From: Takakia lepidozioides
Taxonomy: Eukaryota > Plantae > Bryophyta
Length of the DNA stretch: 6,689 nucleotides
Direction: 5' to 3'
Assembly: GCA_030704615.1 (NCBI GenBank)
Contig: JAKLZA010000031.1
Location: 1 to 6,689 of the forward strand
Under the pieces are notes generated by a model, which was not told the origin of the DNA, did not search any database, and was given only the letters and a program-made list of their open reading frames with translations. This document shows positions 1 through 6,689 of the stretch, piece by piece; the stretch's first letter is position 1, and every line of letters begins with the position of its first letter. Made by a program: the position numbers and the translations under genes.

Positions 1-399
1 AGTGGCTTGCCTGAGAGTACTCGGCTTCAGTTAGCGCAGGTTGTGAGCAGACACTGGAATCCCTGCTGGAGCTTCAGTTTGGCCATGCGAGAGATTGGCC
101 GTCGTCCGTAGTACAGGAGCTTTCAAATTCCGCCCGGGTCTGGATCTGAGGTCTCTCTCAGAGAGAGCCACGCCCTTCAGGCGGATTAAGTCCCAGCCAA
201 AAAGATATCCTTTTTGGGTGGTAATGCCTGGAATACCCATGTTAAGCCAAGTATAGCATGAGATTTAGGGTACGGGTCCAGGAAGCCAATGGCGTCGCCA
301 GCCGAATAATAAGCGAAGGCCGTCGAAATTATTGCCAATGCGCATTTAAATGTCGGATGAAGCCTCCATGTCGGAAGAAAATAGACGAAAAACAGTCCC

Positions 400-720
400 G
401 GAATTTCCTTCACGCAGGTAATTCGGATCGGCGGAGGATGGAAATACGGCGCCGAATTTCCCATCCGTGCAGGTAATTCGGATGCGCCCGATGGAAATCC
501 GGCGCAGAATTCCATCCGCGCAGGTAGGGCGGTGCGCCAACTTTCCTTCAAGCAGGTAATTCGGATGGGCGGATGGATGGAAATCCGGCGCCGAATAATT
601 TCATCCGCGAAGGTAGGGCGGTTCGCCAAATTCCTTCCAGCAGGTTAAGTCGGCGCCGAATTCCATCCTGCCGGTAAGTCGGATCGGCTGCCATATGATA
701 TTCGGCGCCGAATTTCCATC
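400..720 (-). repeat. Left array of palindrome-bearing units, inverted relative to 1025-1470
   Basis: Cores at 448, 501 (variant), 587, 652 and 704. The linker GCAGGTAATTCGGAT is the reverse complement of ATCCGAATTACCTGC in the right array. A private sub-unit AGGTAGGGCGGT.CGCCAA occurs at about 522 and 611. Confidence 0.88.
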
Positions 721-1093
721 CGCCATTTATTTCTGAGCGCAGGAGATTACCTCCGTGCAGGTAATTCCCATATAAGAATTACCTTCGTGCAGATAATTCA
801 CATACAAGAATACCGTATGCAGCGTAATTTCCAGTAGGAGAATTACTTTGTGCAGTAATTCTGGCACGAGAATAAACATCGATTGGATTACGCAGGAAGT
901 AATTGTCCTGGAAATTACCTGCACAAAGGTAATTCTTGTATGCAAATTACTGCCATCGAGTGTAATTCTTATATGATGGGAATTACCTGCACGAAGGTAA
1001 TTCCCGCCTCAGAAATAAATGGCGAGTGAAATCGGCGCCGAATATCCATACGCACGAATCCGAATTACCTGCTGGATGGAAATTCGGCGCCGA
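650..1093. repeat. Long imperfect inverted repeat (foldback), arms ~210 bp, axis ~872
   Basis: CGCCATTTATTTCTGAG (721-737) is the exact reverse complement of CTCAGAAATAAATGGCG (1008-1024). GGCGCC cores mirror at 704/1034 and 652/1086, and the arms align inward to about 861 and 886. Confidence 0.93.
743..1005. repeat. Eight ~32-bp units of hairpin motif GAATTACCT-N6-AGGTAATTC, four on each side of the axis
   Basis: Units start at about 743, 776, 808, 840 and 886, 911, 944, 980. The best copy is GGGAATTACCT-GCACGA-AGGTAATTCCC (978-1005). Loops are TCGTGC-like on the left and GCACGA-like on the right. Confidence 0.88.
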
Positions 1094-1470
1094 ATTCCAT
1101 TCATCCACGATTCGATTACCTGCGGATGAAATTCGGCGCCGAATATCCATATAGACACCGATCCGACCTTACTGCTGGATGGAAATTCGGCGCCGAATTT
1201 CCATTCATCCACGATTCGAATTACATGCAGGATGGAAATTCGGCGAGAATATTCCATATGGCACCGATCCGCTTACCTGCTGGATGGAAATTCGGCGCCG
1301 AATTTCCATTCATCCACGATTCGAATTACCTGCAGGATGAAAATCGGCGCCGAATATCCATATGGCACCGATCCGACTTACCTGCGGATGGAAATTCGGC
1401 GCCGAATCTCCATCCATCCGAGATTCCACTTACCTGCTGGATGGAAATTCGGCGCCGAATCTCCATCCGG
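1025..1470 (+). repeat. Tandem array of nine ~52.5-bp monomers organised as ~105-bp A/B dimers
   Basis: Cores at 1034, 1086, 1135, 1189, 1242 (variant), 1294, 1346, 1398 and 1451. A perfect 26-bp palindrome ATGGAAATTCGGCGCCGAATTTCCAT occurs at 1179-1204 and 1284-1309. Confidence 0.95.
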
Positions 1471-2115
1471 GGTAATGGTCTCTGTCGGAGAGGTGCCGCC
1501 TCTCCGCCGCTCTGTTGATATTCGGTGCCGAATTCCGTCCGGGGTGAAATATGACTGCCAGGTTCCGACTCTCCCCCTCCCGACTCATTGGAACGGCCCC
1601 GAATTGAAATTCGGCGCCGTTTTCTCATCTGTGGAGGTTTTTATGTCGGCCAGTTTTCGCTCTGACCGCCCGACAAACACTTCCTTTGGGGGGGCCCGGA
1701 TGGGAAATTCGGCGCGAATGGCCGTCCAGGGGATGTCTCTGTCGCACACTGGCCGGCCTCTGTGCCCCAGGCGACTTCATCCGGGCGTCCCCTTTGTCGA
1801 TATTCGTTGCCGAATTCCGTCCGGGGGTGAAATGTGACACAACTGCAGGCCACTCCCCCCTCCCGACTGCATCCGAATCGCCCCGGATGGAAATTCGGCG
1901 CCGTTTTCCATCTGGGGATGTTTTTATGCGTCCAGTTTTCGGCCCTGACCCCCGACACGACTCCCTTTGGGGGACCGGATGGAATTCGGCGCCGAATCTC
2001 CATCCAGAAGATGTTCTCTGTCGCACACACTCCGGCCTCTGCGCCCGAGGCGACTTCATCCGGGCTTCCTCTGTTGGATTTGGGTGCGAATTTCCATTCG
2101 GGGTAGTAATGTGAC
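1440..2115 (+). repeat. ~280-bp tandem repeat, about 2.4 copies
   Basis: GATATTCG.TGCCGAATTCCGTCCGGGG occurs at 1517 and 1799, with a degenerate copy at 2077. Shared blocks are CCCCCTCCCGACT, TCTCTGTCGCACAC and AGGCGACTTCATCCGGGC. Confidence 0.92.
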
Positions 2116-3114
2116 GGCACGGTGCCGGCTTATCCCCTTCAGCCGTCATATCCGGACGGCCCCCCACTTTCTGACTGCATACCGTTGGCAGTTATTGGCA
2201 AAGACGAGGGGCCGCATTCCGGAGACAAGGTTCATTAACACTCTGACTGTGGATTTTTGAGATAGTTGGCTCCCTGGATTTGGATCAGGCTTCGTCGCTC
2301 GGACAAATCGGCATCGCATTCATTCCCATCGCTGCACCCCCTTCTACCAGGGAGCTTCCCCGCACGCCATCCTGGCAGTCTTGTGTGCACATCTCCCATG
2401 GCGGGAAAACCCGAGCGCTACAGTGTACTGCCCTCCTCACGAGCATAGAGCTTCATTCCGTGCAGAGGGGACACTGCCGGGTGATGGAGAAATATCTGTG
2501 CGTTCGATACCACCTGAAACCGGGGTCGGTTTTTTTGGAGGAGGAAAGGAAGGACTCAAACGGCCTTGTTGTCGAGAGTATTGTTGTGCTCCACGATGAT
2601 TTCGGCGATGGCAGGGAATGGCGAGTTCCACCATCGGACAGCGTCATATACAGGGCTGTTGGGGACTTCATTTGCCGCCAAATGCACCGTCTATCCTGGC
2701 GCCTTCCACGAAACAATCCGCGAATCAGAGAGTGGGTACCTCAAAGAGAGAAGTCCGCAACGAAGTAAATCCAGAGCCGAACCCATCCATGAAGACGACC
2801 GAGAACCGGGTTGTTCACAACCTGTCCGACTCAGACGAGGTCATGGAAGTTCCGAGGTCGTCCTGGAGATCAGGCAGTCCTCAATGGACGTCAGTGGAGG
2901 AGGGAGTCATATTCCCAGCACGAGCACCGCAGTTCGATCATTCTAGAAATTCTGCGAGGGCTTCACCTGGAGGGACACCGGTCGGAGCTGGCCGGGCTGG
3001 ACTACAACAAGTTCGCAATTAAATCGGTTACATGCCTTCCGCCGACGTCGACGGTAATGTCTTCTTTGAGTTCCTCCTCGGCGGACTACTCGAGGGCGTC
3101 CGGAATGTTGACAG

Positions 3115-3470
3115 ATATGGATAGAAAACATGACGGTCATCCTTGGTGCGTTACCAAACCACCAGCATGAAGATGCTTGATGGTGTGCGGGTGCGCTACG
3201 TTGTTTGTGCGGGGCGCGTTGCGGTGTTTCTCCCCAACTTGCTTCCACTTTAAATCCAGAGGTCACAGGAACGAGACCGATTGGACAGGCACAGCTCACC
3301 AACCATTTCGAGCTCAGGAGAAGGTTCCGAACTCCACATTTAAGTGTGCGCATTGCAAAGAAACCACCACACTGCATGTCTGTTTGTAATGCCAAGCAGT
3401 TCTATGTGTTGCCACCGTTTCCCTGACCTCACCCGAGCTTGCATACACGTTGGTTCCCATTGTCACAAAT
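3115..3470 (+). other. GCM-like (WRKY-GCM1 superfamily) zinc-binding, putative DNA-binding domain
   Basis: The pattern W..CxG..C..C / CxxC..C..GxHxH (DGHPWC..VCAG.LRCFSPTC..CAHC..CNAK..HVGSHCH) parallels the GCM domain order W..CLGVVVC..CPNC..C..GxHDH. Recognised by eye across four frameshifts. Confidence 0.55.
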
Positions 3471-3914
3471 TGGCGAGGGGGAACTCGCGGGAGGCTGCCC
3501 ACGAAGCAGAGCAGCTCGTTCAGGAGGAGGTTAAGTTGAGACCGGGTGCCAAACCCAAACAGATACAGCTCCAAGCCGCCCATAAGATGGCATGGCCAGA
3601 ATTATGTCGGAAGACGGCTCGGATAGAGTTCCTCTCGACGAGAAGGAAATGGAGGCATTGCTCGAGTCGGTGTCCCACGTATGTTCACCGAATGTCCGAA
3701 ACCACATTGTCTCATGCAAACAGAAAATGGGCGTGGCTCGGATATGCACTCCATTCTGGAGGTGAAGCGACGATGTGGATATGACTACATTCATGGAAGT
3801 AGGTTTCCAGGACAAGGGACTGAGGCAGATCGTTGTTTCGTATTCAAAATGTCCACGTGTGGACCTGGCAGTGCGTCGAACTGGTCGACAGGATGACGAG
3901 TGGGAACTTGTCAA

Positions 3915-4630
3915 ACAGTTGGGTCATGTTCGACCATATCAAGCGAATTACAAATCACCAGTGGGTGACAATGGGTGCACATGTCTACGACACCCACTGC
4001 AGGATGCTAATGACAATGCTATTTGTGAGATGAAAGGAGAGGACACACAATCGGAGATGCTTCTTTGGCAGGGAATAAACGAACAGATGGCCAAGGCGGG
4101 ATTGCCCCCTCCCAATTTCCGTGGTTTCATGGCGGACAACGCACAAGCAAATTGGGCTGCCATCCGAAGGGTGTACGGGCAAGACCCAAATGTTCCCATG
4201 GAAGGCAAGGAGAGATCTTGTGGGTTCCACTTTCTGCAGAGCCTTTCGCAGTACACAACCAGGCTCGTGGCGCCAGATTTCAGAGAGGAGCACCGTTCCA
4301 TGTGCCTGCGTGGAAGCGCGCTCCACCTTGGATGATGCAGAGACACAGTTTGCATGCATACGGGCTTGGTGGACATCGTCAGGTGCTGCTAAGGAAATCA
4401 GACGAAGGAGCAATGGTCAGTTGGCTAGCATGGTGGCATTATCGTTTCCTCCAGTTCGGCGACTATATGCGGGAGGTGAGTTGCACGAATTCGCGTCCCG
4501 TTGGATATTATTCTTGGCCATATTTGTAACTTGCTTGTAACCTCAACATGTGCTTGTGCAGGAAATGTGTCTCGACTCCGACACCGACATGCCCACGACA
4601 AACATGCCGAATCAGTGCACTCTTCCTGGG
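3915..4630 (+). other. MULE transposase catalytic DDE domain
   Basis: D1 is in VMFDH (GAC 3932-3934) and D2 in FMADN (GAC 4135-4137). The Mutator CxxH signature CGFH lies at 4219-4230, and E is in TTN-x-AESVH (GAA 4609-4611), matching the MULE TxNxxES motif. Confidence 0.85.
4476..4561 (+). other. Spliceosomal intron, 86 nt, phase 0
   Basis: Donor GAG|GTGAGT at 4476, T-rich interior with TTGTAAC twice, acceptor TGCAG|G ending at 4561. Splicing joins FGDYMRE in frame to EMCLDSDTDMPTTN and removes an in-frame stop. Confidence 0.8.
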
Positions 4631-5744
4631 TGCCTCCTCTGCGGCGCATCTGGTGGACATCCTCACTGCCACAACGGAGGACATTGTGAGGTCAATTATG
4701 CAGCAATGCAGGTACAACGAGTTCTTGAAAGGGAAACAGGGGGGCTTGGGGCCGGACAGGCAGGAAATGCTGATGCGGACTGCCTCCAGATCGAAGAATC
4801 CTCGGAAGTGGGCGGCGGCCTTGCGAGAGGGCCTTCGGGACACGCCATTGCTGCGAAGAGGCCAACATTTGGAAGGAGATGTTCATACCCGTCCAGTGAG
4901 ACGAAGACTTGACGAGGCACCTGGCGGAGAAGAGGATTCATGGCGAGCTGACAAGAATATTCGCACGCTCCCTCGTGGTCCGGTGATGTTGTCCGAGGAG
5001 GTCTCGTCGAGCACCGAAGTCCTGCACGTTCAAGATCGTCATCTCCTTTGAGCACAGGGCGCGTGCCCCGGCAACATAACGAGCCATCTGTAGTAAAGCA
5101 ATACAACATTCCCATTGTGGAGACAAGAGTGTCGGAGTCACAGTGGAGAATTGCGAGGACATTGCCGGCATTTCGAGGGAAGTGTGCGCCATCCGGGTGG
5201 ATACGAGAGCACGCTGTGGTGAGATGATTCGGAGGAACCCACGGTGCTGTACCTGCACCTTGTTTCAGCGGCAGATTTTTGACTCCCACATTTGCTCACG
5301 CCACAACGCAGACATTTGGTTCTGTAGGCACGACATAATGACCTGTGTATTTGGCAAGCCCAAGTACGGGATTCAGGGAATGCCGGAGCCTCCGGGCGTC
5401 TGGCCTGTTGCACCGGGTTGCAGCCTCTCTCAGAATGAGGCGGATGCTCTATCTGCAGCAGGATTTCGAATGGTGCAACGCACAGACATCCCGGCCCACG
5501 CATTTCCGGTTCTCAGACCCAGCCATTGCATACTGCTCGGTCCAGTAGAGACGGATTGGACAATTCTGCACATCCCACAATGCGATTCGGAAGAGTGAAG
5601 AGACGACCCTCCCAACAAGTTGAATGAGACTCGGATTGCCATGCTCTTGGGATGGCTTGCACTATTCAGAGCTCCGTGGACGTACCCCCACCCGGCCTTG
5701 GGCGTGTGTATCGGATGGCAACGGCCGGCTCGGCTGTACGCGAC

Positions 5745-5860
5745 GATGTATACACAATTACGATTGGAGTGGAGCCGACTTGCAACTGTACGGACTTCTC
5801 GTTGATGGAAGCAAAGAAGGGTTCGAAGTATTATCCGTGCAAGCATCTGTATTACATTTA
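5745..5860 (+). other. SWIM zinc finger
   Basis: YTITIGVEPT-CNC-x16-CKH-LYYIY gives CxC at 5781-5789 and CxH at 5838-5846, the canonical CxC-xn-CxH pattern. Confidence 0.92.
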
Positions 5861-6127
5861 CCTGAAGAGGTTGAGGATGAACGTGACTATTGATGACTTT
5901 ATTCATGCACCGGCGTTGAGCGTGTGACGAGCTGCACAAACTCCTTCTTAGGGATTCCAGAAATCATTGATGGGGCAAACGGAATCCTCCATATGGATAT
6001 TTTCAAATGCATTTTGCTGTATCAGACTTTTTTTTTTGCAGTGTAATGAAATGCACCCCAAAACTCCTGGAAATGAGGCAATATTCCATTCAAACTGAGA
6101 TCCAACAGAAGCAGTTCTGGGCCATTT

Positions 6128-6362
6128 CTGGAAAAATGGCGCCGAATTTCTCTTTTTGGGGCCGAAAACTCGCTAAGTCCCAACATGCACTGGTACCTGT
6201 GTTTGGGAAAATGGCGCCGAATTTCTCTTTTTGGGGCCGAAAACTGGCTAAGTCCCAACATGCACTGGTACCGTGTCTGGAAAAAAATGGCGCCGAATTT
6301 CTCTTTTTTGGGGCCGAAAACTGGCTAAGTCCGAACATGCACTGGAAAAATGGCGCCGAATT
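6128..6362 (+). repeat. 75-76-bp tandem repeat, three copies plus a partial fourth
   Basis: Unit GGAAAAATGGCGCCGAATTTCTCTTTTTGGGGCCGAAAACT.GCTAAGTCC.AACATGCACTGG, with cores at 6138, 6213, 6289 and 6352. Confidence 0.96.
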
Positions 6363-6376
6363 ACCTGTCATGAGGG

Positions 6377-6495
6377 GACCTATAGCCGCGGAATTCGCAC
6401 CATTTTTCGCCAGAGAGACCTATTGCCGCGAAATACGTCGCCGTTTTTTCAGGTTACGGACCCTATTACCGCGAAATTCGGCGCCATATTTGCAC
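6377..6495 (+). repeat. Three degenerate ~41-bp tandem units with the core motif in opposite orientation
   Basis: GACC(C)TAT..CCGCG.AAT.CG..(G)CC.T.TTT starts at 6377, 6417 and 6459. GAAATTCGGCGCCAT (6473-6487) is the reverse complement of ATGGCGCCGAATTTC in the 75-bp unit. Confidence 0.75.
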
Positions 6496-6689
6496 ATGTC
6501 GCTAGGAATTGGCATGAGCGGAAGACAAAATATCATGAGCACAACTGTCAAAAGTGCAATTTTCCCTTCAAGGGGCCGAATAATATATTGTTTTTTTCTG
6601 ACACATTGCATTAAATTATTGTTTTTTATTGTTTTATTGTTTTTATTTTCGAAATTTGTACTTCTGCTCATGAAAACCGATTGTGTTAC

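Follow-up and report, generated by a model that had tools for sequence, protein, structure and literature searches.

The DNA considered here is a stretch of 6,689 nucleotides from the bryophyte Takakia lepidozioides (assembly GCA_030704615.1, contig JAKLZA010000031.1, positions 1 to 6,689 of the forward strand), referred to below as the window. It contains a decayed transposase gene of a Mutator-like element (MULE), arrays of short dyad-symmetric repeats on both sides of that gene and, within the array upstream of it, a large imperfect palindrome whose axis lies close to position 871. A sequence-only reading of the window had interpreted this palindrome as the place where the termini of two transposon copies meet end to end. 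In this paper we describe the palindrome, the modules of which its arms are built and the gene beside it, and weigh the explanations for its origin. The explanation we favour, with about even confidence, is that the palindrome marks a switch in direction, in the simplest case produced by inverted duplication, within the array that precedes the gene of one old, dead Mutator-like element. On the sequence examined, the junction interpretation appears weakened and is not supported.

Structure of the palindrome

The palindrome and its modules are arranged as follows; no strand is assigned to any of them.

401–744, left arm, outer part: five GGCGCC-centred dyads (centres 450, 503, 589, 654 and 706) whose linkers have CAGGTAATTCGG on the + strand, followed by a short segment that is mirrored at about 1003–1021 (repeat analysis and site scan)
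745–860, left arm, inner part: four hairpin-type palindromes (745–766, 777–798, 808–829 and 841–860) with a period of about 32 bp, pairing with 887–1002 in the fold
861–886, asymmetric palindrome centre, an unpaired loop (symmetry scan, alignment and fold)
887–1027, right arm, inner part: mirrored hairpin-type palindromes (913–934, 945–967 and 981–1002) and the mirrored short segment (scan and fold)
1028–1474, right arm, outer part: tandem array with a regular unit of 52 bp (104 bp as a dimer), 8.4 units of GGAAATTCGGCGCCGAATTTCC in all, its linkers carrying CCGAATTACCTG on the + strand

The large imperfect palindrome is genuine. When 400–872 was aligned locally, with gaps, to the reverse complement of 873–1470, positions 401–859 paired with 1397–887 and 384 of the 437 columns were identical (88%), with 40 gap events. 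An ungapped symmetry scan placed the axis at 871–871.5. Symmetry is higher in the inner block (640–872 against 873–1100), where identity reaches 91% over 200 columns with 18 gap events and the Kimura two-parameter distance is 0.096. In single-strand DNA folding, 640–1100 forms one long hairpin with a dG of -157.8 kcal/mol, compared with -54.5 +/- 4.4 for shuffled sequences (z = -23.7). The sequence-only reading had described a foldback of about 440 bp at 650–1093, and both the identity of the inner part and its single hairpin bear this out. It had also placed an unpaired centre of about 24 bp at 862–885; the centre is indeed unpaired, but its size has to be corrected to 26–27 nt, at about 860–886.

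Further from the axis the two arms are set apart by insertions and deletions of whole units. The array units on the left are of mixed length, 53 and 89 bp, and those on the right are regular, at 52 and 104 bp, so that the difference in unit structure noticed earlier between the outer arms holds. In the inner 200 columns of the arms the 18 gap events equal the number of substitutions (18) and are mainly 1-bp length changes in short runs; these gaps over 640–1100 could reflect natural slippage or imperfect polishing of a short contig.

Repeat modules of the arms

Two kinds of module make up the arms, in agreement with the earlier description of them as arrays of small palindromes: hairpin-type units near the axis and, beyond these, GGCGCC-centred dyads with a polar linker between them. 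The dyad site is 22 nt long and has the form GGAAATTCGGCGCCGAATTTCC. There are 24 copies of it in the window at an identity of at least 15 of 22 positions, 18 of them upstream of the gene (450–1990) and six downstream (6140–6482). Where the array is regular the dyads are spaced 52–53 bp apart, or about five helical turns. The core TTCGGCGCCGAA, with one mismatch at most, occurs 14 times against 0.01 expected. Within the right-arm array, 1028–1466 has a period of 104 with 4.2 copies and 88% matches, and identical 29-mers lie at 1180 and 1285. On the left, the arm opens partway through a dyad site, at 401.

The linker is marked by the 12-mer CAGGTAATTCGG, which has + strand copies at 415, 470 and 553 and - strand copies at 1060, 1321 and 1373; the whole window has seven matches against 0.07 expected. 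Its change of strand bears out the claim that the same repeat family continues in mirror orientation beyond 650 and 1093. The small hairpin-type palindromes, 20–23 nt long and of the type AATTACCTGCACGAAGGTAATT, flank the axis, four on the left and three or four on the right, the uncertain one being a degenerate copy at 886–906 that was read by eye. No hairpin-type unit was found elsewhere in the window, including the part beyond the gene; they occur at the axis only.

The transposase gene and the flanking arrays

Outside the palindrome the window contains the following features, with the strand given where one is assigned.

1–400, left flank: no significant mirror in 1398–2110 and no inverted match to 6350–6689 above shuffled sequences
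1475–2110, 283-bp repeat in about 2.2 copies, with two to three sites per copy that are degenerate or asymmetric
2111–2398, + strand, presumed promoter and 5' leader of the transposase gene, assigned by position only (from the last repeat unit to the first residues that can be aligned to full-length relatives)
2399–5927, + strand, decayed MULE-type transposase gene with several frameshifts (homology and SWIM finger)
6127–6345, 75-bp repeat in 2.9 copies, running opposite to the 283-bp units; asymmetric sites GAAATTCGGCGCCATTTTT at 6132, 6207, 6283 and 6346, all on the - strand
6346–6500, one site fused to CCGAATTACCTG (6356–6367), then about three 42-bp units (6379–6500)
6501–6689, a region with CATGAGC, then an AT-rich tail from about 6590 (read from the sequence)

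The gene has a DDE core at about 3900–4390, an intron-like GT..AG segment at 4478–4561 and an N-terminal region that looks zinc-finger-like by eye. In tblastn searches with relatives the frame switches in the order 3, 1, 2, 1, 2, 3 between 2463 and 4544, and frames 1 and 3 are both needed in the C-terminal part, 5305–5921. Because alignment to relatives requires these repeated changes of frame, the gene is a pseudogene. Among all sizeable open reading frames (ORFs) of the window, Pfam recognised a SWIM finger alone (PF04434, at 5751–5852 in the ORF 5652–5927; E 3.9e-4, 20.3 bits against a cut-off of 19.6). The Pfam MULE model (PF10551) matched neither the window ORFs nor the relatives of at least 700 residues, even at E values up to 1. 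The relatives of the gene number 248 proteins, the best at 58% identity over 97 residues, and they include proteins of 700–724 residues as well as liverwort proteins from Riccia sorocarpa and Calypogeia fissa. A full-length relative, P0167, falls among the MULE and ZSWIM1-3 clusters of a language-model protein atlas with a very high score, the ten best matches all being of one family, and this is taken as a lead only. Word-based protein searches with the DDE ORF and with the ORF read through the array were both blank. The earlier claim that the window holds a Mutator-like transposon with modular, foldback-style repeat arrays appears to be supported.

Towards the gene, the right arm runs unbroken into the 283-bp units, which end at about 2110, carry the asymmetric site GAAATTCGGCGCCGTTTTC on the + strand at 1606 and 1890, and contain CCGGGG in every unit. 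Beyond the gene the 75-bp units are related to them in inverted orientation: 6311–6365 matches 1945–1889 on the minus strand over 57 nt at 72% (E 4e-5). The 42-bp units that follow have their asymmetric sites on the + strand, at 6430 and 6473, and a small switch of polarity lies near 6370–6400 in this downstream array, between the 75-bp units of the - strand and the 42-bp units of the + strand. At the right end of the window no large mirror was found, only a single pair of 22-nt sites. No convincing target-site duplication was found when 393/401 was compared with 1474, 6510, 6518 or 6539. The ORFs of 1–400 gave no Pfam match and no recognisable coding signal.

Candidates for element ends or for a second copy in tandem were considered and rejected. 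The alignment of 320–412 with 6469–6570, both of which include CGGAAGA..AAAATA, was first noticed by eye and scored 19.5, with real-sequence controls reaching 20.5 and the reverse-complement control 24 (blastn E 4). A looser alignment of 1–470 with 6050–6689 scored 26.9 against a shuffle maximum of 27.2. Finally, CCCGG at 396–400 and CCGGGG at 1469–1474 were considered as outward-facing tips; the arm starts inside a dyad and, as noted above, the second motif recurs in the 283-bp units.

Related elements

A related element from another sample (L138, in a long-read assembly from ENA) has transposase ORFs that are collinear with the gene of the window at 31–48% identity, and the collinear ORF also contains a SWIM finger (E 1.9e-3). 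About 1 kb upstream of its transposase lies a direct array of 96 bp in 13.4 copies with a 192-bp higher-order unit (L138:5324–6609), built from 22-nt dyads of the form GGAGTTTC-TGCGCC-GAAACTCC, in which the core is nearly identical to that of the window and the arms differ. This array is one-directional, every linker having the same polarity, and there are no sites downstream. Its core is mainly TGCGCC or TGTGCC, and one site is flipped (GGCGCA). A further perfect palindrome of 23+23 nt is found nearer the gene, at L138:7168–7221. No terminal inverted repeats (TIRs) of at least 45 nt were found in L138.

On the other side of the L138 array, minus-strand ORFs (237–5332) diverge from the transposase, the first of them starting about 50 bp from the array. 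No homologs of these ORFs were found in the window. In the ORF at L138:237–641 the residues DLIVVDVSTCY stand where amino-methyltransferases have DPPY, and the protein atlas, with a high score and as a lead only, places this ORF in methyltransferase clusters. An identity of the divergent ORFs as ParB or methyltransferase was rejected, as Pfam and PDB sequence searches were blank and the atlas lead stands by itself.

Arrays of comparable kind are found near other relatives. In L139 a tandem array of 119 bp in 3.4 copies lies ahead of the gene, and a truncated relative in Riccia sorocarpa (L129, CM100798.1) is flanked by arrays of 84 bp in 2.7 copies (8376–8604) and 57 bp in three copies (12510–12680), which contain palindromes of the AAGCTAGCG type. 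The Riccia arrays suggest that arrays of subfamily-specific palindromes are a feature of the clade. A more distant relative from JGI metagenomes (L121) is an element of about 11 kb with TIRs of at least 386 nt (1–386 and 10677–11062) that are 97% identical, and neither GGCGCC sites nor comparable arrays were found in it; its pair of genes, of 416 and 353 residues, was found again in at least eight samples.

Copies of the site itself were also sought more widely. A metagenome scan with a loose pattern of two cores 30–55 bp apart gave 120 loci, none of which was related to the window (blastn, 0 hits). The exact 21-nt site had no match in a viral collection, and in a prokaryotic one it had a single chance match, in a metagenome-assembled genome of Myxococcales.

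Origin of the palindrome

Several observations fit an inverted duplication internal to the array. The array family continues to the right into the 283-bp units, and the left arm halts at 401. The hairpin-type units are confined to the axis, the L138 array ahead of its collinear transposase points one way only, and other relatives too have tandem arrays before the gene. Repeats upstream and downstream of the gene are mutually inverted, with the sites of the 283-bp units on the + strand (1606 and 1890) and those of the 75-bp units on the - strand (6132–6346). Because the 12-mer at 6356 mirrors the left arm and not the right, it is the right arm that would be the extra, inverted copy. The decay of the gene fits the divergence of 9–13% between the arms. 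The sequence-only reading had offered as its alternative an internal cruciform, or a bidirectional control region between divergent genes; of this, a structure within the element or a control region ahead of its gene agrees better with the evidence than the junction does, and the version with divergent genes is treated separately below.

As to how such an inverted copy may have arisen, the cluster of hairpin-type palindromes probably provided the fold-back point for copying about 0.5 kb of the array, and the duplication would have left the asymmetric centre of 26 nt. The arms may then have drifted neutrally, acquiring 9–13% substitutions and many indels, and the 104-bp array of the right arm may have grown by unequal exchange. 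Today the structure would have the potential to extrude as a hairpin or cruciform and, if it were transcribed, could give a long hairpin RNA directed against the arrays of its own family.

The dyad array as such is probably functional, since a relative from a different organism has an array of this kind with other arm sequences. Its dyad symmetry, its spacing of 52–53 bp and the retention of this kind of array in both the window and L138 suggest that it probably serves as a loading platform for a dimeric DNA-binding protein encoded by the element; the subterminal repeats of Muta1, which aid binding of the transposase, are an experimental precedent (PMC5499845). Candidates for the binder would be the putative zinc-finger region at the N-terminus of the transposase or a cargo protein in sister elements.

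Some observations weigh against the inverted duplication or against parts of it. The argument from polarity at the far end hangs on one exact 12-mer and six asymmetric sites, and the polarity of the sites flips again beyond 6379, which leaves the right end mixed. Position 401 looks like a breakpoint, and the left arm may once have been longer, perhaps even a whole inverted copy. Neither TIR tips nor target-site duplications were found in the window, beyond which the ends of the element may lie, and no other copy of the window family was retrieved in the metagenome, viral and prokaryotic scans or in the word searches. The helical phasing of the sites is not robust, a Rayleigh p of 0.015 being obtained at 10.4 bp only, among seven periods tried.

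According to the junction explanation, the tips of two copies abut at about 872, in a tandem, a head-to-head pair or the junction of a re-integrated circle, so that the hairpin units are the terminal motif and the GGCGCC units are subterminal repeats. We consider this unlikely. It would account for the symmetry being best kept beside the axis while the outer arrays diverge, as would be expected of TIR tips with variable subterminal repeats. It would also account for the order met when reading inward from 873, namely palindromic terminal units, tandem repeats and the gene, which resembles the layout of Muta1 (PMC5499845). Moreover, bacterial transposases of the IS256 family, which are relatives of those of MULEs, form circles with abutted ends (PMC7780238). 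To the left of 401, however, there is no element body and there are no mirrored 283-bp units. The left flank does show a mild excess of 7-mers in common with the right-end region, 26 for 1–393 and 6050–6600 compared with a mean of 13 for control regions, which is a point in favour; its alignment to that region is not significant (blastn E 4, with real-sequence controls scoring as high). Hairpin units, which a terminal motif would place at the far end too, are missing beyond the gene, and at 6356 the 12-mer is oriented as in the right arm, where an element starting at 873 would need the inverse. The left arm begins mid-dyad at 401, which is like a breakpoint and not like a terminus. In L138 the one-directional array lies between the transposase and a divergent ORF, and the ends of that element were not found. 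Muta1, the one eukaryotic MULE that has been studied biochemically, transposes by a cut-and-paste route in which hairpins form on the flanking DNA (PMC5499845); circle junctions are thus not expected as intermediates.

The tandem multimer or excised-circle junction proposed by the sequence-only reading is therefore left unsupported, with no second body, hairpin units at the axis only and the wrong polarity at the far end. We regard it as quite improbable that about 872 is a true junction of abutted ends, that is, a tandem dimer or re-integrated circle of a eukaryotic Mutator-like element formed as in the IS256 relatives. If it were, a DNA transposon of plants would have passed through a copy-out or circle-based stage, or the element would target its own termini; no circle or dimer step has so far been described for eukaryotic MULEs, and the evidence leans against it.

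A rather unlikely alternative is that the palindrome descends from a bidirectional control region, in which the arrays faced outward, rightwards to the transposase and leftwards to a cargo gene that has been lost here. The model for this is L138, where the array sits between the transposase and the minus-strand ORF that starts about 50 bp away, and where further minus-strand ORFs follow, including the methyltransferase-like one (a high-scoring atlas lead only). That array is itself unmirrored, however, with linkers all of one polarity, and the window has no homologs of these L138 ORFs and, in 1–400, no gene remnant and no ORF with a Pfam match.

It is also quite unlikely that about 401–1474 is a separate, short, non-autonomous foldback element of the FARE1, FB or Tm1 kind, inserted at or in the left end of the transposase element. 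Such an element would consist of two long modular inverted repeats with their tips at the outer edges and a tiny loop between them. Plants and animals are both known to have FB-like elements that encode a MULE transposase (PMC3169594, PMC5499845). At about 1.07 kb, with modular arms containing tandem sub-repeats and a short loop, the palindrome has the build of one, and the type of repeat shifts at about 1474 from 104-bp to 283-bp units. The right boundary is nevertheless not sharp, as the first site of the 283-bp units has a homolog at 1442–1478, the left edge falls within a dyad site and not at a terminal motif, and no direct repeat of 8–11 bp flanks 401 and 1474.

Least probable by far is an artefact of assembly or sequencing (a fold-back read that is chimeric, or palindromic repeats that led to a false join in a poorly polished short contig): the window, at 6689 bases, may be a whole small contig, 1-bp indels between the arms are unusually many (18 gap events to 18 substitutions in the inner 200 columns) and dyad-symmetric repeats can mislead overlap assembly, but the mirror symmetry stops short of the sequence end, the arms differ by 9–13% substitutions as well as by whole units, and a unique centre of 26 nt with colinear, unit-specific arms is unlike a false overlap. 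A simple fold-back read is unlikely because the outer arms differ by whole-unit indels, as the sequence-only reading had argued from their divergence, and because 1–400 is unmirrored. To our knowledge the palindrome centre matches no sequencing-adapter sequence.

Comparison with known elements

The closest known kind of element is the foldback-type MULE, represented by Muta1 of Aedes aegypti, a 'type 2 foldback element' (PMC5499845), and by FARE of Arabidopsis and Tm1 of nematodes (PMC3169594). Shared with these are a probable transposase of the Mutator superfamily and long flanks of tandem short repeats that are able to fold back. Muta1 also has a palindromic motif, and its subterminal repeats are additional binding sites for the transposase that strengthen binding and raise excision (PMC5499845). 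Where Muta1 has direct repeats of 12 bp, the window has 22-nt dyad sites about 52 bp apart. In foldback elements of this kind both ends are long inverted repeats composed of tandem sub-repeats; in the window, arrays of sites flank the gene and are partly inverted, but their unit structure and length differ, with 1.7 kb of array before the gene and 0.4 kb after it, and the large palindrome lies wholly on one side. A terminal motif and a target duplication of 8–9 bp were not found in the window.

Mu killer of maize is an inverted duplication of an end of MuDR whose hairpin RNA can silence the family (PMC3440606). Like Mu killer, the palindrome would have arisen naturally by inverted duplication within the 5' end region of a Mutator element, and it would have the potential to form a long hairpin RNA. 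Mu killer, however, takes in some of the mudrA coding sequence, and its transcription comes from a neighbouring gene (PMC3440606), whereas in the window only non-coding array is duplicated, the arms (401–1474) stopping about 900 bp short of the coding start at 2399.

With the junctions of IS256, IS30 and IS911, which occur in circles and (IS)2 dimers (PMC7780238), the palindrome has in common that inverted ends face each other across a short spacer. The IS junctions have defined tips a few bp apart and are part of a copy-out/paste-in mechanism; the window has a spacer of 26 nt and no defined tips. Within this one window, moreover, abutted termini are at odds with the missing left body, the lack of hairpin units at the far end and the polarity of the 12-mer.

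Transposon ends built from repeats were known already, as were inverted duplications of ends that act as silencing triggers (Mu killer). What is added here is a Mutator-type family with a long array of 22-nt, dyad-symmetric, GGCGCC-cored sites before its gene. We regard the feature as a modest addition, one more form of a familiar kind of structure, carried by an element that is dead. Its mirrored array offers a natural test case for the fold-back of an array or for hairpin RNA, and a concrete DNA probe with which to look for the protein that recognises the sites.

Minor features of the flanks

Rfam and tRNA scans of the window found nothing. In the right flank, CATGAGC occurs on the + strand at 6512 and 6533 and as its complement at 6669, that is, within 165 bp, with about 0.8 occurrences expected in the whole window. 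In the left flank, the near-palindrome GGTCTCTCTCAGAGAGAGCC (147–168) resembles, in direct orientation, GGTCTCTGTCGGAGAGGTGCC (1477–1497) at the start of the first 283-bp unit, a likeness whose significance was not established. A 10-mer of GGTCTCTCTCAGAGAGAGCC is found again, inverted, at 6412–6421.

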